From NCBI GenBank assembly GCA_946965045.2, contig OX337236.1, positions 2,418,001 through 2,482,000 of the forward strand: DNA of 64,000 bases, given 5' to 3'. This DNA comes from Epithemia pelagica (Eukaryota > Protista > Bacillariophyta). Positions within the stretch are counted from its first letter, which is position 1. Every line of letters begins with the position of its first letter. Under the pieces are notes generated by a model that was not told the origin of the DNA, did no database searches, and worked only from the letters and a program-made list of their open reading frames with translations. The position numbers and the translations under genes are program-made. Positions 8,702 through 39,114 of this stretch are shown piece by piece.

Positions 8702-8993
8702 TTAAGGAACCAGATACCATGCACCCCATCCGTACTGTTAACCAAAAGACAAAAAATGCCGTCAGAAAATGGTTCTTCGAAATGATTCCCGCCATCTCGT
8801 TACAGGGACTTACTTCTTTCTTTTCGAATCCGTAGCTCTTCCATGCTGTCTCTGTGTGGCATGGCTTGGTTGGAACAGTGTTGTTCCATTGGAATGCAGC
8901 TGTGCTACCGTCAATCGATGTCACGGCTCTTGTGGAAGAATCGAGCGGCTGTGTGGAAGGGACGTGAGCGACGATTTGTGGGAAATTGAACAT
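8702..8993 (-). CDS. GWGAWYLVP microprotein, copy 1 (70 aa, 2 exons: 8814-8993, 8702-8734)
   Basis: Exon 1 ends ...PTKPCHTETAWKSYGFEKKE at a GTAAGT donor; 79-bp intron; TAACAG acceptor; exon 2 YGWGAWYLVP*. The spliced product matches the intronless paralogue at 38845-39114. Confidence 0.85.
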
Positions 8994-10321
8994 GATGTAT
9001 CGAATGTAGCGGTTTATGTAACTATATGCAGTGGAATGGAGTGTTGTTGTCTGTTACGGCAGACGGTGAAACAATTTGTGTTTTGCTTTTTGTAATCACA
9101 AAGTCATGTTTTTCTTCCTCGGAGGACTTTCATTGTCGTTTGACACACTATTCGGATTTGTGCATCTTTTGGTGCAACGCACACAAGTTTGATGGTAGGG
9201 GATCACCGCCTCCTTCAAGGTTTTAGCTTGCAATCATTCCTTACACCTCGAACGAGTGGTTCACTCAGCGAGGAACTAGTAGAGGAATCTTGCAAATCTA
9301 CTGTGATCCATGAATTTGCACTCCCCGCAACCAATTGCAAATGCACAGATCATGCCACTGGAAAGTTGATAGGATCCATCGACGACAGGCCCGTTGACAA
9401 TTGGCATTGACACTACGGCTTCACAATGAACGACAACATGACATCAAGGAATCAAGGAATGTAGACATGAATGACTCAGAGGAACACGACTATACGCCAA
9501 AGAGTAGAAAAAGCGAAACGTGCATGACATCACCTGCCCGAATGGGACGTTCTTTGCTTCCTTTTTGTTCTTGTTGAGGAACCGACTGAAGCGGAAGATC
9601 TGTTCATTCTTGCATCTCGTCAATAATCACATATCAATTGACAAATGACGTTGAATGGCTTGAGATGACATGTCCTCTGTCACCATCTGTCACGAGTCAC
9701 GCAAGGTGATGATTAGATTGGTTCCCGCCTGATTCGTGATTTCACTTGTGTCAAGCCAAGATGATTCCAAGTTGTCGATGGGTGATCAAATGCTGATGAC
9801 CAAGACAGGGTTGTCAGTGTCAATGACCAATCCTTGTAGCAGCATCGAGCATCGAGTGGCTGGACGTGATTCATTCATGAGTTGATTGATAACAGTTACA
9901 GTTACAGGGCACTGGATGCCATGGAAAATAGACTGTGGTCATTGCTCTCCGAACTCGTAACCAAACTGACGACTGCCTCCTTGTTCATTACTCAAACTGA
10001 TACTTCGGCCTATATTGCACGGCCCTGTTAAACCTAAAATAGACAATAAGGTTTTGTACTGCCCGAAGTCCTCGTTTTCATTGTTCTACCAGTCGTCCCG
10101 AGCGTCGTTAAAGTGGCAAGGCATATTCTACATAGATGGAAGTCATCTTAATCTATCTTTTCTTCATGGACTTATTTGAAGGCCTTCCGTCTTCTGCCTT
10201 CCGTCTTCTTTAAGATTTTTGTATCGGGATAGCTTCTATTGTGTTTAGCCTGACGGGTACAACACCAATCAACATTGCTCAAGTCATCAAATTCTCTCAT
10301 CTTGGGTTGTTCGTAACAGAC

Positions 10322-10625
10322 TCAAGGAACAAGGTACCAAGCGCCCCAGCCATACTGTAAAGCAGTGATCAACATTGAAATAAGCATGTCAGCTTTTAAT
10401 GCCAAAAGTCGGGAAACAAACATATGACGACCACATGGAACTTACTTCTTTCTTTCCAAAGCCGTAGTTCGCCCATGTTGTCTCTGCGTTGCATGGCTTC
10501 TTTGGAACTGTGTTACTTGTTCTCGTAAGGGCTGGATTGGTCGTTGTGGTGGAAGAATTTCTTGCATTTTGTCGACCAAGTGATCGCGCAGTTGTTGATG
10601 CAGCGTTTCGTGAAGATTGAAACAT
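10322..10625 (-). CDS. GWGAWYLVP microprotein, copy 2 (70 aa, 2 exons: 10446-10625, 10322-10354)
   Basis: MFQSSRNAASTTARSLGRQNARNSS...PKKPCNAETTWANYGFGKKE | GTAAGT...TTACAG (91-bp intron) | YGWGAWYLVP*. Confidence 0.85.
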
Positions 10626-13213
10626 GATGAATTCAAAGAGTATCGGCACAGAAATTGCTTTCAGTCAATCGGTATTTGCTCTGCAGAGTATGCAGCTTGA
10701 GATTTTGTGTATGAACATGCCGAGAACAAGAGGAGCAAAGCATGTTTGAACCAAAGCGATTGGGTATCTTTCTCTTGCATTCCTTTTGAAGCGCGACAAA
10801 CCATGGTTCGGATTTGGCCATGTTCGATGGTGCACACGCAGTTAAATTGTTGACATTTGCTGGCACTCGGCACTGGTTTCGCCATGCCGTGAGCCTCATT
10901 TTGCCGGAACAAGGTGTACAGTGGAAATCGATACGCGAAAAAAGCAATCAGACACAGGTCCCAGTCACCAGTCACCAGTCACACATGAAACGACATCCCA
11001 TCGGCCATCAAAAGATCAGGTTAGATTTCTTAACTCTCTTTACAGAATATTCAACGATGAGTATTGTCTTTTTGCTGTCCGTCCATGGTAGGTAAAATTT
11101 GCCCAAACAAAGATGATGTGACGAAGCCTACACAATTACGGTAGTTGCCTCTAGTAGCTCTCTCTATCTCTAGAGATTAGGGAGATCCTTCAAAGCTACG
11201 ATTTTATCATTCCATCCATCAAAAACACAGCATTCACATTACTACTCTGGAAGGAAGCTCGAATCCAACAAATACAACTTCTCCTAATCCTTGAAGTAGT
11301 ACATGTAAACAGTTAATGACTTTGGGATCACTGAAGGTTTTCGCTGATGCGATCTAGATGTACAGTTACCCAGGACGAGTCAAAGACGGTATCGTATCTT
11401 GTCTGCACCTTAGGTAGTAGTTGTTGATTGTAAAAAGAGGAATATATATGCACTTTTTGGACCGGAAGTCGAAACAAAATAAACCAAACGAGTAATACTC
11501 CGTAGTCATCTTAAGTACCAGTGCTAATCTGTTTGCTCGTTGAAAGACATGGGAAAATCATCAATCGTCTACAGACAGTCCTCCTTTGCCACTCGTAGAA
11601 TGAACATTGCCACTGCCACCAGTGGACACTGATAAAAGACTTCCCATGGATTCTGTAAAGATGGACAATGGTAGAAAATATATCTATCCCGCGCAACAAT
11701 GGCAATCGAACTCAGTGAGATTAGGACTTTTCTCACTCAGAACCGTGATTTCCGCCCCCAAGCATGAATTGGTAGCGTACCTCATTTGAATCCATGAAAT
11801 GAAAGCCATCCTTCGAAGAACATCTACTTTTTGTCGTGTTGATTCCGCTTGGTGATGTGGATTGTGGAGGAAGTTTCAAGTTGAAACTCGGACTTCGTTT
11901 CATTTCATAGGAATCGCATAATCTGATTGATGGTTGGGTAGTTGCTGTACCAGGTACCTGACTGTTGCATATCTTGTCGTTGAAAGACGAAGATACTTCG
12001 GCGGCATCTCTTGCAGCTATGGGATATGATCGTCGTGGTGCCCGTGAACGAGCCGAACACGACACAGTGGTGAATGGGGACTTCCAGAAGACCATTATGG
12101 TGGATACGGGGATAAAAGAACGCTAGTCAAGGGACGAGTGCTTGCTTTTTTGTGCGTTCTTTTGACCTCCATCCTTTCCATTCTCGTTGGGTTCGTATGC
12201 TTCGATTGGCGATGGTGTGTGTTGATGATGGAGGGAACGATCCATCCCTCGAATGAGAATTCTTCAAATTTTCATCTTGCGCGTTGAGCTACAAAATCAC
12301 TGTAAATCGACTTGTAGCGAGAGGTATGCGACAGATCGGGATTGAATCTGAGAGCCCTCTCTCTTTGCTGACGAAAAGGAGATCGACAATAGACACATGG
12401 AAAGTGGAACGATTATGGAACGGCAACGTCTTGTCTGGTCGAGAAGAAGTATCCCAGCTAAACCTTCGGTAGTTGTGTGATGTGGCCGCTCCCCTTGCTT
12501 GGGTACTTCCATGATTTTGTTCATCTTCATGGAGTGTTGCACTCAGCATCCGAGTGCACAAAGGGTCTCAACGTCAAATCTTCGTTGCCACCACAAAAAT
12601 CACCTCCACCGCAAAACAAGTCAAATGTGGGACATTTCTTTGTGGCGGTTCAGAGTGAAGGGTGTTCTTCTACTTGATTCTGCCGTTGTCTATTGTCTCA
12701 TCTCACATTGAACGGGGAATCACACGTTTTTCACCTCTCTCCATCGAACGAGTTTCGAGGATCCAGGAGACAAAACACGAAAACCAAGGTCGCGTCGTAG
12801 AACCGTCACTTCCAAATGCAAACTAGGTTGAAAGACCGGCCATTTGGGGACCCGCTCGGAGTTGGTAAATTGAGTGAAAACACAAAAGGAGAACCGGAAC
12901 GCAACAATCAAATGATAAACTTTGAGTGAACCTCAACAAATAATGGATGAACAAGTTCGACCGCATGATCTGCTTCTACTTGTTTTCTAGTGGAACTGGC
13001 ATGTTCTCGTTAACTGATCAATGGTGAGTTGCTCAGGACATGTACAAAACTTGGCATTTTTCGACTTCTGACACGTTTGAAAAACAATGGATGGGAAGAA
13101 CGACCTGAGCACGTACAAATGGGGTGCGCTTACGCTGGTGAAACTTCCGCAATTCGTTTATTGCTAATATATATTTTGCTACTTACACTCCAGTTCATCA
13201 ACATGTTTCATAG

Positions 13214-13823
13214 TCACGAAGAATCATGGCTTGAACTTCCATTCATGAGTTGCATCCACAGAGGCAACATTCCTTGTTTGACAGATCTTCGGCCGTTCGA
13301 GGTACTTCCACCACCTTTGAGAGCGAGTCGACCACAGGGGCATTTCGCTTTACCGCCAAGATTTTCCTTGCGTTCTATCCAACATTCACGATGAAAGCTA
13401 TGGCCACAAGGTAATTCCAAGAGGTCCTCTTCGCTGACTTCTCCAAAGCAGAGGCGGCAGTGTGGTGGGGGAGCGTTGCCACTGCTCTTGTCGAGGGGGC
13501 GAACCTGAATTTGGAAACGACTAAATTCAGCCATGCCCGCAGTCGCCTCATCGTAGGTCGTGTAGGAGTCTCCGGCACGCCTCCATGGCGTCGAAAAAAC
13601 ATTTCCGGGCATCCTCTTCTTGCTGGCAGATATCTTCCAGAAGCAGTTGTTGAAGCCAGGCTTTATGGGTTGAACTTCTTGGTTACATAAGGGGCAGAGA
13701 CTTTCGAAGGTCTGGGACATAGCAAGATTGACGTCGCGGAAACCAATCTTGCATATAACCATTTCCTGGTGAGCTTTGCAGCGACGATTGCGACATTTTC
13801 CTTCAAGGCATAAACCAGGGGAA
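13214..13823 (-). pseudogene. 3' half of ubiquitin-like domain + RING-H2 gene, severed by Copia-B
   Basis: Continues the frame from 20835 once the element and one TSD are removed: ...APEWRIA|SPGLCLEGKCRNRRCKAHQEMVICKIGF...CPLC...GFNNCFW..., then RING-H2-like CRLC...CGHSFHREC...CPC. Confidence 0.88.
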
Positions 13824-13828
13824 GCAAT

Positions 13829-14121
13829 TGTTGGAAATAATGAGACAAACGAAAAAATGATTCACGAGTGCTCGGCACCGCCCGGAGTGAAGCATCAAAC
13901 AATGACCGGAAGTACATATAGAAACAGTCACGAGCATACGCGCGAGCCAGAACAGAAACGCGTAACGTTTGCTGACGTAGTGAAATTCGGAAAAGCAAAG
14001 ACGAGCAAGGCGAAGAAATCCTGTGCTCATTCTTTGGAGATAATCAAGGCAGTAAAGTAAAACGACGTTTGATTTACGACGATAGTGCTTAAGCTGACGG
14101 CTCTGCACCCATCGTACAACA
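13829..14121 (+). repeat. 5' LTR of Copia-B
   Basis: TGTTGGAAAT...GTACAACA; differs from the 3' LTR at GGCAC/GGCAT and GACCGG/GACGGG. Confidence 0.96.
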
Positions 14122-14169
14122 TTATCTCCAAAGAAAAACGATTTGCTTTCTACCCAGTGCCAAAGTCCA

Positions 14170-14851
14170 ATGCCAAACGCGCGAGATATCGGTCAAGAAC
14201 GTGGAAATCAAGAATACAACGAGTTGGTACAAGAGCTCACCAATTTGTCCATCCGACAACAAGAAATTGCGCACGACTGCGAGATCTCCGACCGGCCAAT
14301 CCCCAACGGCCACCAGTGGCCGTCTCTATGGCCCAACAAGTACAAGCTGGTTACGAGACGGAGACAGCGAAGAAGAGTTGACCCCAAGAAGCAACGAGAC
14401 CTCTCAGGTGGGTGCCAGTATCGCAAGTTCGTCTGTTGAGGTTGTGGGTGTTATCCGTCGAGTTGAAAGAGAAAGACAACAAGACCCATCCGAGTACACG
14501 CCTGCCGAACTTACTGCGCTCCAAAGTGGATGCGCGTTGTGGACGTCCGCGACAACAGGGAAACGGTACATCATTCATCCCAGTCGACGCTCTTTTGCCA
14601 TCGGGGATATCGTCAAGACTTCCAATCCTGCCAATCCGGGAAACGACCTAGCGCCCTCTCGACGAGACGGAACAGGCGTGATTACCAAGGTGCACACTGT
14701 CCAAGTGTCGCTTCGTACTGACAGTGGGCAAGAGATAAGGCGAAGCAAGAACAACGTTCGGTATCTTTCGGCCGAACGAGATGAGCAGTACGCCCAATTC
14801 GAGCCCGTCGAACCAGGCTGGCGCCCCAACTACGCCAAGTACCGCGCCTAA
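14170..14851 (+). CDS. Accessory ORF(s) upstream of Copia-B gag: coiled-coil plus KOW/SH3-like barrel, probably one frameshifted gene
   Basis: ATG 14170 opens MPNARD...NELVQELTNLSIRQQEIA (frame 1). Overlapping frame-2 ORF 14201..14851 has FAIGDIVKTSNP...GTGVITKVHTVQVSLRTDSGQEIRRSKNNV. Confidence 0.5.
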
Positions 14852-17800
14852 CATGGAAGGAAACCAGTCCAACGGTGGACGTGGAAGACGTGGAGGTCGT
14901 GGCAGAGGCCGTGGTGGTCGTGGTGGTAGAGGAGGACGAGGTGGTCTACACAACAGTGGGACAACATTCAGGGGTAACACAGAAGGTATGAACGGTCATA
15001 TCTTCCAAGTGTTCTACGAGTGCAATGATAAGCGCCAGTTCGCACGAACGCTGGAGGCGCTGGAAGAATACATCGCCAAGAATTACAAGCATGCGGGTGA
15101 CATGATGCCTTTGACGAGGGAATTGAAGAATCCGGATATTGCTGAACCAGCCGACCTTCCAGAAGGAGAGAAGAGTCGCGTGAAGACAATCCTTCTCGAG
15201 AAACAGATCGCCGCCTATGTTACGCGATGTGACATATTGGAAAGCAACCTCCAGGCCACATATGCAGTAATATGGGGGCAATGCAGTGAAGCCATGCGCG
15301 CCAAATTACAAGGATTAGAAAAATACAACGACGCCCGAGACAAATGTGACTGTGCTTGGCTCCTAACACAGATCAAGGCAATACGACACAAGTTCGAAGA
15401 GAAAAGATATGGGTATGCGTCTCTGAATGACGCTTATAACAATTTTTATTCCCACCGCCAACAGAATGAAGAAGCCCTGGCGGATTATCTGCACCAGTTC
15501 AAGGAGAACGTCGATGTTCTGGAACATTATGGTGGTGCTGTGGGAGTCGACAAAGGTTCTCAAGAGCTCATTGAGAAGTATCTAGAGCCTGGAGCGACCG
15601 TGTCCTCCGAAACCAAGAAGAAGATGAGTCGTGATCGCGCTCTGGCGATCCAATTTCTCAAGGGTGCCGACCGCAAACGTTATGGAAATCTGCTGATTGA
15701 GTTGGAAAACCAGTTTTCCAGAGGAACTGACCAGTACCCTCCTGATTTGACGGCGGCATACGGCATGCTCGTCAGCTACCGAGGCACTAGACAGTCCGCA
15801 CTGTTACAATTCTTTCTGAATCGTAGGGACATTGATGCTCGGTAGAGCAGACAATCAGGTAGGTCACCAACCGATACAAGCTTCTCAGGGTCAGAGAAGC
15901 AAGCAAGTCGAAGTCTATCAGAAGGATAGTCGGGACACAAAGAAAGATGTGATAAATGGTGATATTGTTAGATTGTGTGTTGATTACTACGATAGGTCTA
16001 CGTGAAATGTTCGGTCCTGCCAAGGGTCATGTGTCATAGGTTCTTGCCGGCAACAGGTTTGGAATAGTTGGAGTCAATTCATGTGATGTATATGACATGT
16101 ATATGTGGACGGATAACATATACAGGGTCAACAGCTCTTGCTTTGGGTTGGCATAGTTGTTTTCATGGCGCGCAGCTTGTTGACAATTTGGAGATTGTGG
16201 GAATGGAAATATGGTCTCGCGTGATCGTGTGTCGTGCTTGGGATACTTAGACCGTTGGGTCGGATAGATGCCGACAGCGCTCGGATGTCGCTTGGGCGCG
16301 CTCGATGATTTCGGGCGCGTACGCTTAGGGCGTTAGTATAATGTCCGAGCAACGGCCAAATTTACGTCCGTTGTAATACCGCACGACCCAGTTTAGTCTT
16401 GGGAGTGAGTTCGTCAATCTATTCTCACTTTTCATGATTTGCGAAGAAATATAGGTCGATATAGCGCGAAGCTAGGGAACATAGCTCGAAGCTAGATGGC
16501 ATGATGCGATAGCACGAGGCTATGTGACATGGGGAATCGATGAGATGTAGAATCTAACCACCATAGACGGTGAGAATTCTAACACGCACCACCATCCTCT
16601 CCCTCGCCCAGTCCAGGCTTACAGTTTGCTCAGACTGCTGACCCCGTCCCCGGTCTTGATGGCGTTCTTCATGAAGCCATTACTTGTTTTCACTGCCGTG
16701 GGCCCGGGCATTATGCAAGTCAGTGTCCTCACCGACAAGATGGGACTGAGGGTAATGCCGGAGTCACCATGCTCCACCATCACCAACCCTCCACATACAA
16801 TTTCACCTTCGCTCACGTTGATTGTTGCCTCTCCCAGTCACGTGTCGCCATCCCATCCACTTGGGTGCTTCTCGATAGTCAATCAACTATCTCGGTCTTC
16901 CACAATGCCTCCCTGCTCCGTAACATTCGGCCATCCTCCCATCCGTTGACGGTTTACACTAATGGTGGTTAACAAGTTTCTGGTTTGGTGGGTGACATTC
17001 CCAACTTTGGAGAAGTGTGGTACAACCCACAGTCTTTGGCCAACATCCTTTCTTTGGCCGCTGTTCGGCAACACTGTCGCGTCACAATGGATACCGCTGG
17101 TGATCCATCCATTGCGGTCCACCGCCGGGATGGAACGGTAATGCTGTTCAAAGAGAGTCCCATGGGTTTATATTATTTCGATGTCAGTGACCACTCTAAC
17201 TTTACTAGTTCTCCCTCTGCTCCTTATCTTTTTCTCAATAACGCGACCGGATATTCCCCTCGGGAGGTCGAAGGAGCGGATCGTGCGCGGATTCTATACC
17301 GGCAACTCGGTCGACCCTCCCAACGCGATTTCCTGGACGCTCTCGCACACAACGTGATTCAAAACTGTCCCGTCACCCCCGAAGACGCACGCCGCGCCCT
17401 CAAAATTTATGGGCCCGATCCCGCAACCCTCAAAGGCAAGACCGTCAAGCGACCGACACCAGCAGTCCCACAACTCATCCCAACGGACATCCCTACCAAA
17501 ATTAAACAAGAGCACCAGCGCGTGACGATATGCGCCGACAACTTCTATGTGCAAGGTCACATTTTTTGTCATACGATCAGCCGTCACCTACATTTCCGTA
17601 CAGTCGCCGCCATCGAGAACCGACGCAAGGCGACCCTCGAAAAAGAAATCAAGGACGTAATCCACATGTACCAAGCTCGTGGCTTCGAAGTGACCGACCT
17701 GCATGCCGACAACGAGTTCGCACCAATCCAACAGAACATCCTGCCCGTCCTGTCAAATATTGTGGCGGCCGATGACCACGTTGGCCAAGTCGAACGTTCT

Positions 17801-20773
17801 ATACGAACAATTAAGGAGCGAGTCCGTGCTACCGTCCATGGCTTACCGTACCGCCGATATCCTACACTAATGGTAAGGGAAGTGGTGGCCCACGCTGTCA
17901 GGACGCTCAACCAACTACCGAGCAAGAAAGGCGTCTCTGCAACAATGAGTCCGAGAAAAATCGTGACTGGTCTTCCCGATCCCGACTACAACAGCATGAA
18001 AATTGAATTTGGGCACTATGCCCAGATCTTCGAGGAACGACGACAAACGAATACGACGGCCCCAAGAACAATCGGAGCCATAGCACTCAATCCCACGGGT
18101 AACGCCCAAGGGAGCTATTTCTTCTTGTCACTCGCCACAGGAGCGCGGGTATCGAGACAGCAATGGACGGAGCTTCCCATCACACAAGCAGTTATTGACC
18201 GTGTCGAGGAATTGGCCGAACAACAAGAACAGCCCCTCATAGATGGAGAACTGGTTTTCGAGTGGGCCCCCGATATACCAATCCACGACGACGCTGACGG
18301 CGACGACGAACCAGACGGTATCGACGACAACGAGGACGAAACACTCGGTGAAGAAGAAGGAGCGGATCCAATGGATTCAGACGACGATGACGGAAATAAC
18401 GAGGAGCCTGGACCTGAAATAGACGAAGAGTCCAGCCAAGACGAGATACCTGCATCGGACGAAGAAGAAGAAGAGCCACCCGTCGTGTCAACAACAGACG
18501 AAGACGACACCGTCGACCCAGTCATCGATGACGAGCCGGAGATGGAAGTCGAGGAACCATCGGAAGATGAAGGAGCGACGGAAGATGAAGGAGCGACTGA
18601 TGAAGGAATGGACGAATATACCGCGGGATATGATGACGAAGTCGTGGATGTCGACCATGAGGAAATGGACCCAGAAATGGCGGATGAAGATTTGGACACT
18701 CCCGTTCCACAGCATACATACAACCTCCGAGGTAATCGCGAACGGTCCTACGAACACAGACTCGATCATCAAATGGACACTGCTGATGGCAGCACGTCCT
18801 ACATGCATATGCAATTCCTCCATCGAGCAATCCGCCATGCGACAACCAACGTGAATGAAAGAAGGCCTATACATTCAATCGTGGCCGAATTCATGTTCAC
18901 CCAGATGTCGGCGCAAGCAGGTATCAAGAAGCACGGACAGCGAGCAATAGACGCACTGCTCAAAGAATTCACCCAATTGGATGGACAAGATACATTCGAT
19001 CCACAGGACGCCTCAAAACTCACTCCTGCACAAAAGAAAGCCGCACTCCGATCCGTGAACGTGATCAAGGAAAAACGCTGTGGAAAACTCAAAGGACGGT
19101 CATGCGCTGATGGGCGATCACAAAGGTCACTTTTTGACAAGAGCGAGACGGCGTCGCCAGCTCTTTCAACGGACACACTCATCATGTCCTTAATAATAGA
19201 CGCACAAGAACGTCGGAAGGTTATCACCGCGGACATTGCGGGAGCATACCTCAACGCCCACATGAAGGACTACGTCCTCATGAAACTCGTTGGTGAGGTC
19301 GTGGACATCTTCTGTCGCCTAGACGAGAAATACAAGAAATTCGTGGTAATGGAGGGCAATACGAAAGTATTATACGTACGTCTCAACAAAGCCCTATACG
19401 GGTGTGTACAATCAGCGCTACTGTGGTACGAACTTTTCGCCACCACACTCAAAGAAATGGGTTTCAAGCTCAATCCCTACGATCCATGCGTCGCAAACAA
19501 AGTGATAAATGGGCATCAATGCACCGTGACGTGGTACGTAGATGACCTCAAAGCCTCCCACGTGGAAGAGAAAGTGGTAGAAGATTTGATTGAGGCAATT
19601 GAATCCAAGTTCGGAAAAATGACTGTTTGCAGAGGGAACAAGCATACGTACCTCGGGATGCAAATCACAGTCAACGAAAATGACACGGTCAGCATCATCA
19701 TGCCGCAATATATTGATGAAGCCATCGAGATGTTCGGGGAGGATGTGAAACAAGGTGCATAGACACCCGCCAGAAAAGGACTGTTTGAGATAAAAGAGGC
19801 GCCCGACCTTGACAAAGAAAGAAAGGAGAAATTTCATAGCATCGTGGCCAAACTGCTCTGTCTGTCACAGCGGGCCCGCATCGACATCCAAACAGCCATC
19901 GCTTTCCTGTGCACACGAGTGGCGAAATGCACACAAGACGATTGGAAGAAGCTGAAACGAGTTCTCCAGTATCTGCATTCAACAAAAGACATGGAATATA
20001 TCGTGGGAGCGGATGACGTTCCCCACCTCCAAACTTGGGTTGATGCATCGTTCGCAGTGCACGATGATACGTGCAGTCATACCGGTGGGGTGATGTCACT
20101 CGGTCGAGGTGCAATCATCGCTAAATCGAGGAAACAAAAGCTCAATACAAAAAGCTCTACAGAAGCTGAAGTAGTCGGAGCAAGCGACTACCTTCCAAAT
20201 ACAATATGGGCGAGGAGATTCCTTGAAGCACAAGGATATAGAATCGCAGGTACGAAATTTGCCCAAGACAACCAAAGTGCTATCAGATTGGAGAAAAACG
20301 GAAGAGCATCCGCAGGCAAACAATCACGACATGTGGACATTCGATATTTCTTCATAAAAGACAGGGTCAAACAAGAGAACATCGAGATCCACTATTGCCC
20401 AACGGAAGAAATGCTAGCGGATTTTTACACAAAACCATTACAAGGGGGTCTCTTCAACAAATTTCGAGATGTCCTACTTGGACACAAACCACTCAGTTCC
20501 CTCCAGAACCCCACGTGCGATTCCTCCACTCGCGAGGAGCGTGTTGGAAATAATGAGACAAACGAAAAAATGATTCACGAGTGCTCGGCATCGCCCGGAG
20601 TGAAGCATCAAACAATGACGGGAAGTACATATAGAAACAGTCACGAGCATACGCGCGAGCCAGAACAGAAACGCGTAACGTTTGCTGACGTAGTGAAATT
20701 CGGAAAAGCAAAGACGAGCAAGGCGAAGAAATCCTGTGCTCATTCTTTGGAGATAATCAAGGCAGTAAAGTAA
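14781..20773 (+). pseudogene. pol: Copia-B single-frame Gag-Pol, disrupted by a solo LTR and two nonsense codons
   Basis: Joining 14781-15801 to 16590-20773 gives one 1735-codon frame: RGG-rich gag, CCHC knuckle CFHCRGPGHYASQC, PR WVLLDSQST, IN CADNF/HADNEF/VERSI, RT TADIAGAYL and WYVDD, RH WVDASFA. Internal stops at 16970-16972 (TAA) and 19760-19762 (TAG). Confidence 0.9.
15802..16584. mobile_element. Solo LTR of a third LTR family, nested in Copia-B gag (783 bp)
   Basis: TGTTA...TAACA termini; TSD CGCAC at 15797-15801 and 16585-16589; excision restores the gag frame (RQSA|PPSSPSP); no similarity to Copia-A or Copia-B LTRs. Confidence 0.9.
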
Positions 20774-20834
20774 AACGACGTTTGATTTACGACGATAGTG
20801 CTTAAGCTGACGGCTCTGCACCCATCGTACAACA
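20542..20834 (+). repeat. 3' LTR of Copia-B
   Basis: 291/293 identical to 13829-14121; preceded by purine-rich GAGGAG. Confidence 0.96.
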
Positions 20835-27891: not shown

Positions 27892-28015
27892 TTTCACGAC
27901 GATTGCTCTATGATTTAGTATGAAAATGAAAATACACAATACATGATTAGGTAAGACCAATACATAGTTCTATTTGAAGTTACATCCATACAGTTCGAAC
28001 TAGTGCACGTATATC

Positions 28016-28603
28016 CTACATAGGAGTAGTCAGTTTCTTGATCGCAATATTGGCAGTCTTGTCATCGTCTTTTCCCTCAACAGAGTTGCATACTAGCTTC
28101 TCGTTGAGAAGTTTCAGAAACGTCGTGGCTCCAACGACACTCATCTTAACCGTGACAACCATGGGCTCCATTGTCATCACGGTGTTAAGTGAGTGTGTCG
28201 TGGCAATCACGATCTTGCTCTTGACAACTTTGCCACTACTTGACTGAAGAATCGTCGTATCAAGTTGATTGTTGATATATTGCAGTGGGATGACGAGCTC
28301 TGGGACAGAATCATCCTTTTTGGTGCGGTCAAAGAAGCGAATTGAGACTGCATTCGTGTTGACTCGAGACAAATAAGTTCGCTGCAACAGCAACACACCA
28401 CGATCAACAATCAACCGACCATCAGCAGAACATTCTCCGGCACTCTTCAGGTACACATTCACCCCCGCTTCTCCAAACACTGTCACTGTTTCCCCCTTTG
28501 TTTCAAGCGACTGACCACCATCACAAACCACTGTGAACCCATTGACGAGTTTCATCGTCTCAAACCTCTTGCTTCCTTTCGTTGAATTCATCTTTCTGGA
28601 CAA
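28016..28603 (-). CDS. Hypothetical cargo protein (195 aa, beta-rich, possibly PH-like)
   Basis: Intact ATG-stop ORF convergent with the transposase; alternating hydrophobic strand pattern; fold guess is weak. Confidence 0.45.
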   Translation of the reverse strand: MSRKMNSTKGSKRFETMKLVNGFTVVCDGGQSLETKGETVTVFGEAGVNVYLKSAGECSADGRLIVDRGVLLLQRTYLSRVNTNAVSIRFFDRTKKDDSVPELVIPLQYINNQLDTTILQSSSGKVVKSKIVIATTHSLNTVMTMEPMVVTVKMSVVGATTFLKLLNEKLVCNSVEGKDDDKTANIAIKKLTTPM

Positions 28604-28705
28604 AGTGATGCAACAAGTGTGAGTGCTTGTTGGGGAGACAGTTCTAACAGCATTGTTTACTTACTTGCCGTCGTGCCGTCTTTCCACCAAAGAACTACTG
28701 TGTCT

Positions 28706-28982
28706 GTCGATCGGTGCAGCACTACTCCAGAACTTGTTGTTCTTGTTTGCTTTAGTTCTAGTATGTGTGTTCGTTTTGAGATTTGTGAGTGCGGGCATGG
28801 ACGAGTTTTTCGCGCCTCATGGCGCACTTCTTAATTAAGGAAAATTTGTTGGCTGGCGTGACATTTGGTCCGTTCGGAACCTATTCCAACCGACACGACA
28901 CACATCGGCCTCATATTTTCCGTGGATCTCCTGTTACAGGAACAACAACACCACAAAAGAGAAGAAGACCACCATGTCGACA
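28706..28982 (+). repeat. Duplicated promoter/ATG cassette, copy 1 (copy 2 at 30697-30950)
   Basis: GTCGAT.GGTGCAGCACTACTCCAGAAC...TGGCGCACTTCTTAATTAAGGAAAATTTG...GTGGATCTCCTGTTACA...ACCACCATGTCGACAA occurs twice, each time ending at the ATG of a + strand ORF. Confidence 0.85.
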
Positions 28983-29534
28983 AGCCCCAATATTGCTTCC
29001 AATGTCGTCGACGCTGAGTCGCCTACAGAACAGGCCATGCGATACGCGAAGAAGATGCCGGAGGAGGCTGTTATGGCTCAGTTCGGGGCCTCAACTGCTG
29101 GTGCTGGCTCGAGCAGATGCCCTCCGATTTCAGTTGTTGATTCGCTCCCCAGTGTTTCCCCAGCAGAGTCATTGACAGTTCAGGATGATGGTACTGTGTC
29201 GTGTCTTCTTTGCCACTCTGGAGATCCACCAGCTGGATTCTTGTCTCACTTGTCTCACAGGCCCATGCCAAATCCCGAACAAGTCCAGGATGCGGATGGC
29301 AACGAACAACCAAGCACAAGTCGATGCGTCATCTGTTTTATGAAGACGAGAGCAATTTGCGCACATCCTGTTTGTCTTGCTAAAACGAAGACCCGCAAGG
29401 TACCGGGAACGGACGAGATCATCAAGACCATCAAAGGTATTGGACTATGCAACGGTAACAGGATTCGTCCTGGGATGACCCGCACCTGTGTTGAAGAGCA
29501 CAGATTCCGAATGCAACAACAGAACACAGCTTGA
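28974..29534 (+). CDS. Stand-alone paralogue of the transposase C-terminal Cys-rich domain (186 aa)
   Basis: Diverged copy of 27297-27891 with the domain Cys/His retained and only frame-preserving indels; downstream about 110 bp (29534-29644) identical to the transposase 3' flank. Confidence 0.75.
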   Translation: MSTSPNIASNVVDAESPTEQAMRYAKKMPEEAVMAQFGASTAGAGSSRCPPISVVDSLPSVSPAESLTVQDDGTVSCLLCHSGDPPAGFLSHLSHRPMPNPEQVQDADGNEQPSTSRCVICFMKTRAICAHPVCLAKTKTRKVPGTDEIIKTIKGIGLCNGNRIRPGMTRTCVEEHRFRMQQQNTA

Positions 29535-30267
29535 TTTCACGACGATTGCTCTATGATTTAGTATGAAAATGAAAATACACAATACATGATTAGGTAAGAC
29601 CAATACATAGTTCTATTTGAAGTTACATCCATACAGTTCGAACTACAAGTATATCTACATAGTCAATTTCTTGATTGTCATATTGAAATTGACATAGGCA
29701 AAAAGGTGGCCCACCAAAGTAATACCAAGAGTGTCGCCAAGTCAAACGATCAAGGGGTCGTCCAGCAAGTTCCGTCCTATTCCACCACACGGGCATGAAT
29801 GAAGACGAACGCAATATACTCTTTGAAAAATTCTCGATGTGTTGGCGCAAAAATATTTTCAAGAAAATCAGGATACCAAGCAAATGATATTGGCTGCCGA
29901 ATTGGCGCTTGTCTCCTCCTCCAACAAGGCACCACAACCACAACAACAAGCACCACAACCGACACAACGACGTCCAAGTCACCAAGAAGCACCACAGCCG
30001 CAACAACGACCACGACAACATCAACGACAAGAGTCGTTTGATGACACCACAGCCGTCTTGTCTGCGGCAAAAAGTGCCACAGAAACCCATCAAGAACAAG
30101 GCGATTCCGGCAACCAAGAATGGCAAGAGTCATTCGGTCATGAGCAGCAACCACATCGACGACTCCAAAAAGCCAGCCAGCACCAAACCAGTTCTGGAGG
30201 AACCGGTTCCGATTGCCACGGGTGAATTGCTCCACTCGGGCGGTAGTCGTAGTCTCTTGTCGGTTTG

Positions 30268-30590
30268 TTCCTCCTCGTCTTCGTGATCGATCCACCCCAG
30301 ACTTTTCAAAACCGCTTTGTTCCATCCACTCCAATTGCGGTGTCGTTCCGTCTCCGTCATGCGGGGCAGGTAGCTTTGGGACACGGCCCACAAGGTTTTT
30401 ATTTCATCGACACTGTCCCAAACTCGCGTGGCCAATCCGGCACAAAAGGCGACACCAAGCGACGTGGTTTCCTTGATTTTGGGTTTGACCACGGAAATAT
30501 TGAGCATGTCGGCTTGAAATTGCATTATGAGATTGTTGGCCGTACCACCGCCATCATTCGCAATGAAGGCGAAGAAGAAGAATCCACCTT
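30268..30590 (-). pseudogene. GK: Captured C-terminal fragment of glycerol kinase (FGGY_C)
   Basis: SLRM(D)GGGTANNLIMQFQADMLNISVVKPKIKETTSLGVAFCAGLATRVWDSVDEIKTLW...RHRNWSGWNKAVLKSLGW; a 1-nt deletion breaks the DGG motif; N-terminal domains are absent. Confidence 0.82.
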
Positions 30591-30696
30591 GGTGGGAACC
30601 AGTTACTATTCGTCCGCGGCCACACCCAAAGGTTTGTGGCCAGGATGGGCCAAAGTCCTCTTGGCCTGTACGGCACCCACGACGGGACGTGGGGCG

Positions 30697-30950
30697 GTCG
30701 ATGGGTGCAGCACTACTCCAGAACTTGTTGTTCTTGTTTGCGTTAGTTCTAGTATGTGTGTTCGTTTTGAGATTTGTGAGTGCGGGCATCGCGCCTCATG
30801 GCGCACTTCTTAATTAAGGAAAATTTGTTGGCTGGCGTGACATTTGGTCCGTTCGGAACCTATTCCAACCGACACGACCCACATCTGCCTCATATTTTCC
30901 GTGGATCTCCTGTTACACCACCGCGAAAGAGAATACCACCATGTCGACAA
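30697..30950 (+). repeat. Duplicated promoter/ATG cassette, copy 2
   Basis: Near-identical to 28706-28982, with short indels. Confidence 0.85.
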
Positions 30951-31555
30951 CTATCAACGGCCGTCGTACAAGTTTGCGCTATCAAGCGCGCATCAAAGCA
31001 GCCTCAGGAGCTGATGCAGCTTCGCAGTGCACAAGCTCCATTCTTGCTCCTTCTGTTTCCGTTTCCAACCAACCCGCGTCCCGGTTGTCGCATCGCAAAA
31101 AGACGACGAAAACTAAGAAGGCAGTGGCAACCAAGAAAAAGAACATGAAGGCAAAGGAGAAGGTGACGATGGACGTTTCAGATTTCAAGGATATGGAAGC
31201 CAAGACGGTGCATGCCAAGATTGTCCCCAAAAAGAATCATGTTGCTGTTTTGTATCCAGCACCCGAGAAGAAGTTGTCCTCATCTCCGTCCCCCCCTTGC
31301 TTTGACTTGATGATGACGATGCGCTTCAAGAACATTGAGACATCATGCAACAATCAGCAATGTTCCGATACTGTGAGGAAGTCCGTGGAAATGCCAAGCA
31401 ACTTTGATGACGACAATAATGAAAATGATTCATCCAATGAAAACTTGTCCAGCAAATTTGGAAAGCGCAATTCGTCAATTGGTGTCGATAGCAACCTGTC
31501 CTTTGAGTTCTCTGAGACTCAGGAGCCAAGTGTTGCCTACAAGTTCGAATACTAG
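30941..31555 (+). CDS. Hypothetical basic/low-complexity cargo protein (204 aa)
   Basis: Intact ORF with ACCATG context and a Lys-rich stretch (RKKTTKTKK...KKKNMKAKEK); no family recognised. Confidence 0.45.
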   Translation: MSTTINGRRTSLRYQARIKAASGADAASQCTSSILAPSVSVSNQPASRLSHRKKTTKTKKAVATKKKNMKAKEKVTMDVSDFKDMEAKTVHAKIVPKKNHVAVLYPAPEKKLSSSPSPPCFDLMMTMRFKNIETSCNNQQCSDTVRKSVEMPSNFDDDNNENDSSNENLSSKFGKRNSSIGVDSNLSFEFSETQEPSVAYKFEY

Positions 31556-31589
31556 GACGTAGTAAGTCTAAAAGCCGAGCTTTACATGA

Positions 31590-31844
31590 CTTTCTATAAT
31601 GTGCCCATAATGTGCCCACACACGTTGCACACACCACAAGCTTCTAGTAGAGGCGCTCCTATGACCCCCATATGTCCTATGTAGGCCAAATGGGGCATCA
31701 AATGGTGACAGAGGATGCCTTAAAGATTGGTAAGATGCATCAGATCATTGTCGTAGGGCTAATATTGATCGAGTTCTATCTACCTAAAATGTTGTGCCCA
31801 ACGGGACATTTTCGCACGTAATGGGCACACCCGGAGGTAAGGCA
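31590..31844 (-). repeat. Right terminal/subterminal inverted repeat of the piggyBac-like element
   Basis: Reverse complement aligns in blocks with 23443-23712; repeated TGTGCCCA motifs. Confidence 0.85.
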
Positions 31845-32208
31845 CTAGTGTGTGGTTACGTTTTGCCTCAATTTTAAACAGGTTATGAGCAAAACAATTT
31901 GGTAAATTTCAAAACCCATCATCGTCTTTTTGTCGTCATTTTGCCGACTTAATCCAACCCACAATAGTTTTTCAAGACGTTGTAACGACGATTTCATCTC
32001 CCGACTCCCGAACGATATAGATTGATCCATTATAGGGTTGTGAAAGACGCAAGTCATTGATTAGTGAGGTTCCAGCGGAAAATACAATTGGAGTTTGAAA
32101 TATCATTATAGATCGGTTCACAGGACGGTCGTCTGGTCGCAAAGCTTACCTGCAGCGAGACAGACCGAGAAAACGGAACAGTGCTTCTTTGAATGAGATT
32201 TTTCGATC

Positions 32209-35200
32209 ATGCCCAGCAAGAATTCGAAAAAGAAAAAGGCCGGTGGGAAACGCGATGCGCGAGGTTATGGCCAACCATCCAATCAAACCAAACAGCCGAC
32301 GCCATCAAATTCCAGCGCTCCTGTTGCTCCGGTTGATGTGACGCAAGCGGAGACAGCAACTGAAAACTCACTAGGTCTTGGTGCAGCAGCAGACAAGCAA
32401 GAAGATGCTGGAATGAGCACAGAAGGAGAACAGTTGTCATTGGTGCCCTCTTCTGTCTCTTCCGAACCTGTGCGTCCTTCCCATGCCAAGAAACAGTTTG
32501 AATCCAAATTTCGAACCGTGATAGATGCCTTACAGGATGACTTGAAATTTACGCCTGCGCAAGTACGACAAGTCGTTTTGGCTTTGCAGTATGATCTCCA
32601 TTCGCTTGATAATGCCTTGGATTGGTTGTGTTTGCGATATTCAGGAATAAGAATGCTCTCACCAGAGAGACAAAGCGAACTTGCGACTGACGTGAGTAAG
32701 AATAAGGAGGGAGAACAGGATGATTCTCCCCTACCCCTGAGATTTCATGATGAGCGTACTGCTCGTCTTTTGCAATACTGGCAACCAAAGGATCACCAGA
32801 ATCTAGCGGCGGAAACGCCTTCCTTGACAGTTCTTTCATTTCCTGTATCCAAGCCTTTGTCTGGGGATCCTTCATTTGAAAGTGGTCAAGCCGCACCACA
32901 GCCTCAATCACCTCTGGTAGTGGCCCCTCATGATGGAAGCAAGAGTCCTGTCGCAACGTCTAGCCACAAGGTGGAGGTGGAGACCAGCACTCCACCGGTA
33001 ATAACGGAGGGTGAAGTGTCTCCGACGAGCTACGAAGAAAACTCTCGCAGTAAGCAAGAAAGCACTGCAAGACTAGAAAATAAGGAATGGATATTACAGC
33101 AATATCAGGACAATGAGCAGGAGCCGTTGACATCAGGGAATCACCTTCAACGATTATCAAAAGATATTCAGACTCTGGGCCAACTGTCAGCTCCACAGCC
33201 ATCTACATCTGAGGTGGCAGGGAGTGCTGAAGACACGGGAACTGCAGACAAGGTAATGAACAGCGTTGGAACAGCACCGATCGAGGCCAAGAGTCGCGAC
33301 GGCGATGATAACATGGACGACCCGATCAAACAACAATTGCTCCAGATTCAAATTGCCGAGCGTGAATTGGCACTCCTGGAAGCAGATGTCTCCAACGAGG
33401 CCAACAATTACATGCGAAGCAAGCAAGAGCTCCAACAATTGAAACAAACTATCAAGGAACGTCGAAAGCATGTTCAAGGTTTGAAACGACGATACGACAA
33501 AATGCAAAGGCAAGAAGAGAAAGAGGTGCCTCCAAGTCATCCATCTGCAAAAAGTACGGACGAAACGAACAACAAGACGAACGAGGAATGGGATGACGAG
33601 AAAAATGTTGGCAACGATGATGGTGATGACGATGAACCTGCTTTGTTTGGTGATGGAATGTTTGATGAACCTGAGGACTCCCAAGGCAACACAAACAATC
33701 CGGTCGTATCCGACACTCCTGCACCGAATACCGCCAATACAACAACTAATGGTTTGTTGCAATGTTCCATTCCTTCCCAGTGGACTGGTATGACACCTCA
33801 AAAGTTCTTGGAAGAAAAATTTCGCAAAGAAAAATGGCAGCCGCCCAAATACACTCAACTGAAACAACCTCGTCGGGGATATCAACTTGGAATTACCTAC
33901 AAGAGCAACAACACGCCTGTTACAAAATCGTGGCAAGCGTATGAAGCAGATTTTGTTTTGGATTCAATCCATTCCCGTGGTGGTAATAAGAAGAAGACAG
34001 GGAACAATCCAGTCAGGGAGTACCTATCGTTGAAAGCTTTGTACTATATGGATCCCAAACCGCAGCTTAATCGTCTTTTTCCTCCAGACATGGCTCAAAT
34101 ATGGTTGACTTGGCAACAAGAGGTTACCGACGCACGTTCAGAACGAGAAAAAGCTGTGGAAGTAGCCAAACAAGAACGGGTTGATCACCTGCTCTCACTG
34201 CTCGACCAGTCCATGAATGTGGATCATGATAACAAGTCCACGCAGCAATCATCCAATAGGATAAGGCACGACGCTAAAACGAATCTTCAAGAGGATATTG
34301 CACCTACCAACACTCCAACTTGGGAAGATGACAATGATTCAGGGTCTCCCTCCGTTATAAAGTCGGATTATCTTTCCCCTTCTTCGCAGGGAAAACAGTT
34401 GCAACAAGCGTTTGCACGCCGTCAAGCATCATCGGACTATCAACAAATGCTCACACAACGTATGAGCTTACCCATGTGGTCGTTTCGTGACCAGGTCTTG
34501 GACACGATTCGAAATCATTCTGTGACGATTGTCTGCGCCGAAACTGGTGCAGGGAAGACGACGCAATGTCCTCAATATGTATTAGAAGAAGCATTTAGTC
34601 AAGGGTACGGAGATGTAACAAAAGTCCTTGTGACACAGCCACGTCGCGTTGCTGCCACCTCGGTAGCAGAACGCGTGGCAGAAGAGCTGTGTGAGGAAGA
34701 GAAGCGAGAAAGTGGAGCTCAATCGGGACAAGTTGGACATTGGGTGGGATATCAGATCCGAATGGAAGCCAAGCTACATCCCGTTCATACTCGCGTACTC
34801 TTTTGTACGACAGGGATTGTGCTGAGGCGATTGCAAGATGATCCATCCTTGAAAGGTATTTCACATGTAATGGTAGATGAGGTTCACGAACGACAGCAAC
34901 AAACAGATGTCCTTTTGATTGCCTTGCGTCAACTGTTGGCAACAACAAGACCAGACCTAAAGATAATTTTGGTAAGCTGAACGACTCAGAAAAGGTTGCT
35001 TGCATTTGAGGAGTATATTTCTGATTTTTTTGCTTCTCTTGTAACCGTTCACGGATGCAAGATGTCGGCCACATTGGATTCCGAACTATTTTGTTCCTTT
35101 TTCGAAGGAGCGCCATTAATCAGCATACCTGGACGGACATTTCCGGTTGCCAGTTACCATTTGGAAGATTTGATTGATGCGACCGACCACATGATTGAAG

Positions 35201-37319
35201 AAGGATCTCGTTATGCTCACCGCGACAATAACTATAAACAAAATCAGATGCTCGTATCAACAACCCGAGGGCAGGAAAAACGAAAAGAAAGAGTGGACAT
35301 AAAACAGGCGTTTGGTGGAATTGGCGACCAAGATGCAGAATATGTGTCAAATGATTATCCAGGATATAAAATGTCGACGCGAAAGTCTATGGATCGTGTT
35401 AACGAAGCGATTGTCAACTACGATCTGATTGAGGATGTCTTGGAGCTCTTGCTGTGTCAGCCACCTGAACGCAACACCACATTGCTCGGTCCTGAAGGGA
35501 CAAACCTTTTGACGTCTGCCGATAATGGTTCTATCTTGGTGTTTTTGCCAGGGTTGGGAGAGATTCGTACTTTGACTGAACGACTCGAGGGGAATCGGAA
35601 ATTTCAGCCAGGTTCGCTAGCACCAGTAGAAATTATCCCAATGCATTCAACCTTATCGTCCCGGGACCAAAGAAAGGCATTTGTTCGACGTCAACATACA
35701 AGTAATGGAACTCCACGAAAAATCATTTTAAGTACAAACATTGCCGAAACCAGTGTCACAATCCCAGATGTTGTTTGCGGTAAGTTCAGCGTTGTTATCG
35801 AATGAACCCTAGCTGCCTTTATGACGCATATCCTTAAAGTTGTCTCCAGTTATCGATGCAGGAAGAGTACGCGAAGTTCGAAGAAACAAACGAACTTCGA
35901 CCTCCATTTTGGATACTGATTGGTGTTCTAAAGCGAGTGCGAAGCAACGTGCAGGAAGGTAAGCAAAAGAAGCTGGAAAGGATCATATTCTGTTTGGTGT
36001 TTGGATTATCGTACAGGGATTAATTATTGCATGCTCATGTTTGAGGGTTTGTGTTTTATTATAGGGCAGGGCGGGTGCGTTCGGGCCTGTGCCTGAAGCT
36101 CTTCTCGTCAAGAACCGCACAGGACGTCATGAAGGCCGCCAACGAACCTGAGTTGAAACGAGTTCCTTTGGAAGAAATTTGCTTGTCCATCTTGGCCAGC
36201 GGGTTTGCAAAGCGTGGCTGTATGGAATTTCTGTCACAAGCTCCACAACCACCATCGCGAGAATCCGTCCAGCAAGCTATTGATGTTCTCTATGCAATTG
36301 GTGCGATATCAGTTCAAGACAATGAAAAGGTTTCCGATACAACGAAAGAGAGAAACGAAAAATGGATTGAAATTCTTACTCCACTTGGAAAGCATTTAGC
36401 GAAACTGCCTGTCGATGTGCGGCTTGGAAAAATGCTCATTTTCGGAGCACTTTTTCGATGCACCGACAGAGTCTTGACGATTGCCGCTGCCCTTTCGTCC
36501 CAATCAATATTCTCTACGTTCTTGGGGGGGAATGCTACAGTTGCAAAGGCAAAGCAAAGGGCCTTTGCGGATACGGAGTCCGACTTTTTGACTCTCTGCA
36601 ATGTCTGGGAATCGTATGAAATTGCTCGATCGACAGCTGGTTCATCTTCGTTCAGAGCAGGAAGAAGGTTCTGTGACTCCAACTTCTTGAATCATGCGGC
36701 GATGCGTGAAATTGGAGATGCGCGACGTCAGTACTTAGACCTTTTGTGTAATATTGGGTATGTGGATCGAAAAGAGGTTTCCCGCCATGACAAATTGCTT
36801 CCCAATGGCAGCATATACAACGAGAATAGCGACAACTCTGAGTTGTTTCATGCAGTTCTCTGTGCTGGTTTGTATCCCAATGTTGCTCATTTGGAACAAC
36901 GTACAACTGCCAGTAACTTCACTCTTTTGCACAAAGAAGAGAGACTTTACTTCCACGAGACCTCAGTGAATGCTAGGAAGAAACAAATGAAGAATGATAG
37001 CTGGGTGGTATTTCACGAAAAATTTGGAACACCTCATCGGGTTTCCATATCAACGACTGCATTTGTCCACCCGCTTGCGTTGGTCCTTTTTGGAGGGTCA
37101 CATGTAGCCGTGAAGCATCTTGAACGACTTGTGATTCTTGATGACTGGATTCGAATGCAGATGGGGGCCCAACTTGGGGTCATCCTGATTGACTTGCGCA
37201 AGCAGTTGGATGCTATGCTTGAGCAGCTCATCAACAACGAGCATCCTACACAGTCAAAACAGATGGATATCTACGAAAACGATACAATCCAAAAAATTGT
37301 GAAGGTTTTATTGCTCTAA
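32209..37319 (+). CDS. DEAH-box RNA helicase, DHX29/DHX57-like, 4 exons (32209-34971, 35062-35779, 35850-35958, 36065-37319), 1614 aa
   Basis: Motifs AETGAGKT, TQPRRVAA, DEVH, L|MSAT, STNIAETSVTI, QRAGR|AGRV, plus HA2/OB-like C-terminus. The spliced length is a multiple of 3. Confidence 0.92.
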
Positions 37320-37729
37320 AGCTTCGTTCCATTGATAATTCCCGATCGCTTTTTACAAGAAGGGTCTGCTATTTTGGTCATCGCGGTGCTAACCTTTTTG
37401 CTATGTGTGCGCGACACATGAACGGTTGTTTGTTATGCGACCAATCTCGTTTTGCAGAGTTCGCGCTCAACGCAAGACGCAAGACTCTAAAGCGTACGGA
37501 ACGTTCGTACATGGCACTCCCTCCGTGAGACATCATGAGTATAGATCGCTTTCGAAGATATACTTTCGAGCGTTTCGTCCCCTGTTCTCATTCCTGAGCA
37601 GCGCTCCCGAACAAGATTGCAGCTGCAGGAACTCCAACATCATTGATCGCCATGTGCTCAAATATAACCAAAAAAGAAAAAGACAGCTTCACACGCTTCT
37701 GATTTTACCTTGATTGATTGATTGAGATC

Positions 37730-38105
37730 ATGTTCATGCTTTCTCGCACGGCTGCATCAAGTACATGTTCACGAACTATCGGCCGCAATGTTGTTGCTGC
37801 CACAAAACCATCCCCATCGACTCCTGTTCATGGAGCAGCAAGCACAAGCACTACATCTAGAACAAGCAGCTCCATCAGCAACACTGCAAAGAAAGAAATG
37901 AAAAATAAAAACAACCTCGGAATAAGTGTATCAACAACTCCCAATCACACCGAGTCCTTATGGGAAACGTATGGTTTTGAAAGAAAAGATGTAAGTACCA
38001 TAACGGCCGAGCAATGACGAATTCTCTTGACGCTTCTAAAAATCCTCGTTGTTTTTAAATGGACTCCTAAAGTGCGGATGGGGAGCATGGTATCTTGTCC
38101 CCTAA
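37730..38105 (+). CDS. GWGAWYLVP microprotein, copy 3 (97 aa, 2 exons: 37730-37990, 38073-38105)
   Basis: MFMLSRTAASSTCSRTIGRN...PNHTESLWETYGFERKD | GTAAGT...TAAAG (82-bp intron) | CGWGAWYLVP*. Confidence 0.85.
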
Positions 38106-38844
38106 ATAACTGAGGCGAGGGAAGAGCGTGGAACGACTTGATGTAATCACAAAATTCCGGCTCTCTCATCCATCCTGGATTCGAGGCTATTCAAAACCCA
38201 TGCTTACCCTGTTCCAGTCCAGCGCAAACGGTTTTCGCACACAATACAAATACCACATGTACAACATATCATTGTTTAGAGTTCACGAAATAACAACTGT
38301 GATTGGAGAGATTCTTGCTTTGAATGTTTTGTAGCACAATATAGTGAATATGTCCCATGTTTCAAGAGGGTTGCACCACGGTCGCACTAAGCTTTGAGAA
38401 GATACATTTCAACCATCGAGCATTGGTCTCATCAGTCTGCTGTCAAGATCTTGTATGAAATTCTTTCGAGTGCATAAGGAGTCATATCAGACGACAACTT
38501 CAGCTTGTCACAGCATAGAACAAGAGACATTTATAAAACATGCTTGTTACCAAGCACATCGGACGTTTTGCCAAATATGGAAAAAAGGACACGAGAGACA
38601 GTATAGGTATCGTTAGATGTTACAGCCATCCGATATGGAGTGGACTTCCAATGGGAATCTATCGCGAGACTTGTTCATCCGAAACGCCCTTGATCTGCAT
38701 AACCCAACATCGTGTTAGTTATGAAGAAAGCCGAGCATCGAATGACTCATGATAGTTCAAGTAACATATTGGCTTGGCTCGGGTATCCAAACTAGGATAT
38801 CGTTGTGACCGGCTTCTGCAAAATGGACGTGAAAGCAGACCTTG

Positions 38845-39114
38845 TTATGGGACAAGGTACCAGGCTCCCCAGCCGCATTCCTTCTTCTCAAAGCCATAAC
38901 CCTCCCAAGTTTGTTCTGTATGAGGAGGGCGAGGAGGAAGAATTCCGTCGGTGGCCATTCTCAGTTCATAGGTGTCACATCGTAGTACGTTGGGACCAGC
39001 TTGGTTGGGACGAAATGCCACGATAGGCGAGGACGAGGAAGAATTTCGTGCCGTATGATGGGTGAGTGAGCGTGCGGTCGTGGTGGCAGCTTGACGAGAA
39101 GAAGAGAAGAACAT
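38845..39114 (-). CDS. GWGAWYLVP microprotein, copy 4 (89 aa, intronless)
   Basis: MFFSSSRQAATTTARSLTHHTARNSS...PPHTEQTWEGYGFEKKECGWGAWYLVP*; N-terminus closely resembles copy 2. Confidence 0.88.
   Translation of the reverse strand: MFFSSSRQAATTTARSLTHHTARNSSSSSPIVAFRPNQAGPNVLRCDTYELRMATDGILPPRPPHTEQTWEGYGFEKKECGWGAWYLVP

Follow-up and report, generated by a model that had tools for sequence, protein, structure and literature searches.

The question raised by a 64,000-nucleotide stretch of the diatom Epithemia pelagica (contig OX337236.1, positions 2,418,001 to 2,482,000 of the forward strand; hereafter the window) is whether four short genes within it, here called c1 to c4, form a genuine protein family, and what the one segment that they share might do. 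Diatoms are major primary producers, and many of their small proteins still lack annotation. At the safest, c1–c4 can be said to belong to a real, ancient and expressed orphan family, the selected part of which is a C-terminal tail of 25 residues with a free -VP end.

A six-frame motif scan revealed exactly four copies in the window of the pattern W-x-x-YGF-x-[KR]-K-[ED] followed by [YC]GWGAWYLVP and a stop codon. In c1, c2 and c3, the two halves of the motif lie in different frames, with 79, 91 and 82 nucleotides (nt) between them, respectively (GTAAGT...AG). Each of these segments has the form of a phase-0 GT..AG intron located 10 codons ahead of the stop. Once the exons are joined, the frames that start at the first ATG stay open over 70, 70 and 97 codons; the frame of c4 is uninterrupted over 89 codons. 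The four proteins (70, 70, 97 and 89 amino acids for c1, c2, c3 and c4) share the tail consensus HTExxWxxYGFEKKE-[YC]GWGAWYLVP before the stop. The genes are composed of the following features:

8814–8993, minus strand: c1 exon 1, 60 codons, MFNF...WKSYGFEKKE
8735–8813, minus strand: c1 intron, 79 nt, GTAAGT..CAG, phase 0; predicted, with an RNA contig match that stops at 8734
8702–8734, minus strand: c1 exon 2, YGWGAWYLVP and stop; 3′ untranslated region to at least 8502
10446–10625, minus strand: c2 exon 1, 60 codons
10355–10445, minus strand: c2 intron, 91 nt, absent from spliced RNA
10108–10354, minus strand: c2 exon 2 and 3′ untranslated region, YGWGAWYLVP, stop at 10322–10324, poly(A) site at 10108
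37730–37990, plus strand: c3 exon 1, 87 codons; syntenic Epithemia clementina orthologue P0003
37991–38072, plus strand: c3 intron, 82 nt, GTAAGT..AAG; predicted
38073–38105, plus strand: c3 exon 2, CGWGAWYLVP and stop
38845–39114, minus strand: c4, 89 amino acids, intronless, convergent with c3

An earlier sequence-only reading of the window had proposed the coordinates, lengths and consensus of these genes, and all of them proved correct. Its claim that three copies are hidden from open reading frame (ORF) calling by an intron within the motif was likewise borne out by the split frames of c1, c2 and c3. Retention of the c1 intron would leave an open frame of 163 codons (window 8502–8993, minus strand); thus ORF callers would give a read-through ORF and not the 70-residue product. 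The intronless c4 (P0001) is the sole window copy present in the protein collections searched. Standard annotation misses the family because a 10-codon microexon encodes the protein end. Searches that rely on ORFs, and many that rely on gene models, can overlook whole families behind terminal microexons of this size.

The conservation of the tail resides in the peptide. The last nine residues are identical in the four window copies, while the codons for Gly, Ala, Tyr, Leu, Val and Pro vary. Over these nine codons, the proportion of synonymous differences (pS) was 0.66 versus a proportion of nonsynonymous differences (pN) of 0.047. Over the whole 25-codon module, the values were 0.80 and 0.17, respectively, with synonymous sites saturated. 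Among the 10 members of equal module length, including those from outside the window, 11 of the 25 positions are invariant; the invariant tail positions include E-23, W-20, Y-17, F-15, W-8, G-7, W-5, V-2 and P-1. By this codon comparison, the tail is under strong purifying selection, as had been suspected.

Four runs of a single organism contain nearly all of the window DNA, and marine RNA libraries contain part of it. Direct evidence of expression came from RNA contigs of four RNA runs, which were aligned to window positions 8500–10800. The gene c2 is transcribed and spliced. Contigs of three runs (X5, X6 and X7), belonging to two marine studies, contain the joint 10354/10446 and skip the 91 bases between. 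The ends of the skipped segment are CT..AC on the plus strand, i.e., GT..AG on the gene strand, exactly as predicted from the letters. The identity of this marine RNA to the window is 99% or higher, and the family is transcribed in the sea. In one c2 contig, position 10108 is followed by a poly(A) run. The RNA extends upstream to 10696 with no further ATG, and the annotated ATG is therefore the first in the RNA as far as seen. For c1, one contig spans 8502–8734, its match ending exactly at the predicted acceptor, and the six letters beyond 8734 do not match the intron; this fits a spliced transcript, but no junction is bridged. The c2 contig of one marine run has base differences at 10534 and 10620, which translate to P31L and F2L. 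Both replacements fall within the variable N-terminal part, and the tail is unaffected.

Homologues elsewhere were found in E. clementina (at least six genes) and in one metagenome. An exhaustive phmmer search with c4 against 1.84 billion representatives matched only c4 itself and four hypothetical E. clementina proteins. The E. clementina loci were fetched and scanned, and in each of the six family genes seen there a phase-0 GT..AG intron sits exactly 10 codons ahead of the stop. One annotated model of 108 amino acids, P0002, is a chimera of two tandem genes, L001A and L001B (JBGMNV010000048.1, locus L001, 10216–12076). The model leaves the first gene midway through its last exon and enters the second midway through its first exon, although both genes have a separate ATG and a separate GWGxW[YF][LF]VP-stop end. 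A further member is unannotated: it lies at 11414–11811 on the minus strand of locus L009 (JBGMNV010000089.1) and encodes 97 amino acids that end in YHTEKVWENYSFAMEN and, past the exon boundary, CGWGAWYLVP.

A degenerate DNA pattern for exon 2 was scanned over JGI metagenomes and hit seven loci. Six of these were chance matches, in which a Trp is read at the stop position. The remaining locus, L005, holds one real metagenomic member, with ...VWKSYGLD in exon 1, a 91-nt intron 10 codons ahead of the stop, and EGWGPWFLVP-stop in exon 2. The intron is therefore at the identical place in all seven relatives (six from E. clementina and L005). The unspliced ORF of this member, P0006, was the sole addition made by a word-indexed profile search; it is indexed in 81 collection blocks, of which 24 contigs were read. 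The Serinc gene beside the L005 member is 60–68% identical to the versions of Amphora, Amphiprora, Nitzschia and Fistulifera, which points to a raphid pennate diatom as the host. The family is so far seen in three raphid pennate diatoms, the window organism included. The search for relatives covered annotated proteins and metagenome contigs, so it does not imply that other diatoms lack the family; predicted protein sets also readily miss proteins as short as these. A small gene downstream of the L005 member (L012 10902–11156; L018 3001–3290) was not counted as a family member. Its exon 1 ends in ...STEQWDFLILD followed by GTAAGT and has a faint family likeness. On the longer contig, L018, a stop directly follows the likely acceptor, and no GWGxW exon was seen.

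Next, the family was compared with known families. The Pfam-A scan (E up to 10) covered 11 members, with three window copies, the unannotated L009 gene, one L001 gene and L005 entered as exon 1 alone, and L001A only inside the fused model P0002. Nine of the 11 matched no family. The other two gave Peptidase_M28 (0.038) and Kinesin_assoc (0.11) in the low-complexity part, below cut-offs, and these matches are noise. PDB sequence profile searches gave chance-level matches only, the ESM Atlas gave zero usable match, and motif strings retrieved nothing relevant from the literature. SDHAF4/DUF1674, with its YGDWERKGRC-type C-terminus, was considered as an identity and rejected, as no member matched it in Pfam at E up to 10. 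That the earlier reading recognised the motif from no described family thus agrees with Pfam, the PDB and the literature. The family itself is undescribed, while a lineage-restricted, probably organelle-targeted microprotein is a general kind already known. Small nuclear-encoded mitochondrial microproteins serve, for example, as accessory subunits and assembly factors of respiratory complexes. The family resembles them in its size of 70–100 amino acids, in a presequence-like N-terminus, and in that they are often missed by gene callers. In contrast, it lacks a membrane helix and Cys pairs, and its sequence is similar to none of theirs.

The age of the family can be read from gene order. Upstream of c3 lies a gene that serves as context:

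32209–37319, plus strand: DHX29-like DEAH helicase, outside the family, with about 400 nt between its 3′ end and the downstream c3

The order of helicase, c3-type gene and convergent c4-type gene is common to the window and to E. clementina locus L009. At L009, P0003 comes after a helicase orthologue that is collinear with the window helicase at 41–70% identity; next comes the unannotated gene, which is convergent with P0003 as c4 is with c3. When the tail is removed, c3 and P0003 still align (z=10). The shared order and the N-terminal alignment imply that the paralogues are older than the split of the window and E. clementina lineages. Since c4 has no intron and its syntenic E. clementina counterpart has one, c4 has probably lost its intron. 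At its N-terminus, c4 most resembles c2 (z about 9). The window helicase itself spans three ORFs (DSRM_DHX29 and DEAD; Helicase_C; HA2 and OB_NTP_bind), with introns presumably between them.

The N-termini of c2–c4 are rich in Arg, Ser, Thr and Ala and free of acidic residues up to positions 47–56 at the earliest, a composition that had been noted before and that our counts reproduce. Their first 30 residues hold 3–4 Arg or Lys and 10–14 Ser or Thr, and R-x-[LI]-[GST] is conserved at 14–15. Eight of the 11 members (c2, c3, c4 and five of the seven relatives) have no acidic residue before position 36. Seven of these eight have 3–5 Arg or Lys in the first 30 residues, and L001A has one. As a pattern match only, R-x-[LI]-[GST] recurs at residues 11–15 in 7 of the 11 members, and the old paralogues have the pattern M[FL]xxxRxAAxxx[AS]R[ST][LI][GT] in common. 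The best 11-residue helical moment is 0.41–0.64, no higher than in shuffled sequences. Three members lack the positively charged, acid-free and hydroxylated N-terminus: c1, P0005 and L005, the last with an acidic residue at position 14. Both c1 and P0005 start with MFNF and have acidic N-termini with a single basic residue. No signal peptide or membrane helix was found in the 11 members, the highest 15-residue mean hydrophobicity being 0.48 or less. The acid-free, basic N-termini with the R-x-[LI]-[GST] site look as a matrix-targeting presequence with a processing site would, and they make mitochondrial import of the c2–c4 types plausible. The sequence-only reading went further and expected a peptide of 25–35 residues to be left after cleavage. 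This part found no support: the only conserved cleavage-like site, at residues 11–17, would leave 53–80 residues.

Structure prediction with AlphaFold gave no fold for full-length c4, with a predicted local distance difference test score (pLDDT) of 59. The last 32 residues alone were modelled with a pLDDT of 83, as a helix (E67–G72) and two strands (E76–G81 and A84–V88). The fold of the tail may tentatively be described as a helix plus hairpin.

We propose that the family proteins have three parts: a short N-terminal segment, which in most members resembles a mitochondrial presequence; a variable, Ser/Thr-rich disordered linker; and the nearly invariant 25-residue aromatic tail. The tail would be the working part, a small docking module that binds one conserved partner, possibly as a helix plus hairpin stabilised by Trp, Tyr and Phe. 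It always ends in the free -VP carboxyl end and is split by the conserved phase-0 intron 10 codons before the stop. The paralogues would deliver this one module under different regulation, perhaps to different compartments. In this scheme, the mitochondrion would receive the c2, c3 and c4 types, and the c1/P0005 type, with its lack of presequence-like features, would not enter it. The analysis shows the gene structures, the transcription and splicing of c2, the conservation in other diatoms, the selection and the lack of a known family; how the proteins are targeted and cleaved, what they bind and how they fold is what we infer, and we give the model as a whole (orphan family, tail as docking module, paralogue-specific targeting) about an even chance of being right. 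A bolder version would make the tail a new autonomous helix-plus-hairpin mini-domain, built on a core of Trp, Tyr and Phe, whose C-terminus must be free, carried into diatom mitochondria, cytosolic in one lineage, and acting as a novel subunit or regulator of a conserved complex. This version is tentative, and we consider it possible but somewhat improbable.

Several observations weigh against the docking-module model. The mini-fold appears only for the isolated tail and from an alignment of five sequences, and AlphaFold confidence is unreliable on short peptides. Fold searches of the tail model against the PDB gave zero structural match. As a very short, aromatic-rich segment predicted to form a Trp/Tyr-packed hairpin, the tail resembles Trp-core mini-folds, designed or natural, such as tryptophan-zipper hairpins; it differs from them in that the family hairpin is predicted only and lacks such a match. 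Composition-matched shuffles reach the observed N-terminal helical moment in a fraction of 0.11–0.43, and the acid-free, Ser/Thr-rich stretch of 45–60 residues is long for a presequence. Finally, in the RNA examined over 8500–10800, a bridged splice junction was found for c2 only.

In an alternative explanation, the proteins are disordered and cytosolic or nuclear, the tail is a short binding motif, and the N-terminus is mere low-complexity sequence. The disorder that AlphaFold predicts for the full-length protein fits this explanation, as do an N-terminal amphipathicity not above that of shuffles and a c1/P0005 lineage that retains the tail and has no presequence-like N-terminus. However, the pattern M[FL]xxxRxAAxxx[AS]R[ST][LI][GT] has been retained among paralogues older than the split of the window and E. 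clementina lineages, which is unexpected for plain low-complexity sequence. We regard this explanation as unlikely, though it survives better than those that follow.

The genes could also encode precursors that release a short C-terminal peptide acting as a signal, a pheromone or a defence molecule. In favour of such precursors, the genes are small and multi-copy, and the C-terminal peptide is invariant while the body varies; in 9 of 10 members a Lys at -12, then an acidic residue, stands directly ahead of the last exon. The PROPEP and systemin precursors of plants lack a signal peptide and combine a variable body with a conserved C-terminal peptide, and the family is like PROPEP and prosystemin in these respects and in being encoded by small multi-copy genes. 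It differs from them in having no sequence similarity, no conserved processing site, and a longer conserved block (25 amino acids) that may fold as a unit. A dibasic site (Lys or Arg at -13) is present in only 6 of the 10 members, and the metagenomic L005 member does not have the segment. Moreover, conservation runs continuously over 25 residues, across the putative cut site, and the tentative fold spans both sides of it. No member has the hydrophobic N-terminal core of a signal peptide. A peptide precursor is, on balance, a still less likely reading.

Could the family instead be a derived fragment of a known subunit? The best PDB profile match was Drosophila NDUFB11 (8esw chain BM), in which NWQSYGFDYKD, just past the NDUFB11 presequence, aligns with tWEsYGFekKe. 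Under this explanation, the family would descend from the complex I subunit NDUFB11/ESSS, keeping the presequence and the W-x-S-Y-G-F-D-x-K-D motif and losing the membrane helix. The likeness consists of a presequence, a linker, and then W-x-S-Y-G-F-[DE]-x-K-[DE]. However, the match has E=0.64, Chlamydomonas PsaH scores about equally, and the match is lost with a profile of the module only. No member matches Pfam ESSS at E up to 10. NDUFB11/ESSS has a single membrane helix after the motif, whereas the family has no hydrophobic helix and its proteins end 10 residues past the motif. We therefore consider such a descent very improbable. The least probable explanation is that the proteins are mimics of GW-type Argonaute hooks, disordered proteins that would present the GWG and AW tryptophans to an Argonaute/PIWI domain: the GWG core in a disordered protein and a second conserved Trp 12 residues upstream recall the GW of GW182-type hooks, but those hooks tolerate variable flanks and are usually repeated, whereas here the whole 25-mer and its free C-terminus are fixed, and the presequence-like N-termini also argue against it.

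For the family with its proposed docking tail, which we prefer, two practical points arise. The family is missing or wrongly modelled wherever this was checked, with two E. clementina genes fused and one missed. The 25-residue peptide is in itself a testable object, which can be synthesised for partner hunting.

The remaining observations concern the neighbours of the four genes. The gene c4 adjoins an 838-residue protein with a PD-(D/E)XK nuclease domain (39786–42302, minus strand), and a 610-residue membrane protein with a CNNM domain lies nearby (42484–44316, plus strand). Neither gene was present in the 10-kb flanks of the E. clementina loci. At 13214–13762 on the minus strand, the window also contains an ORF of 182 amino acids with a RING finger (zf-RING_UBOX, zf-RING_2).

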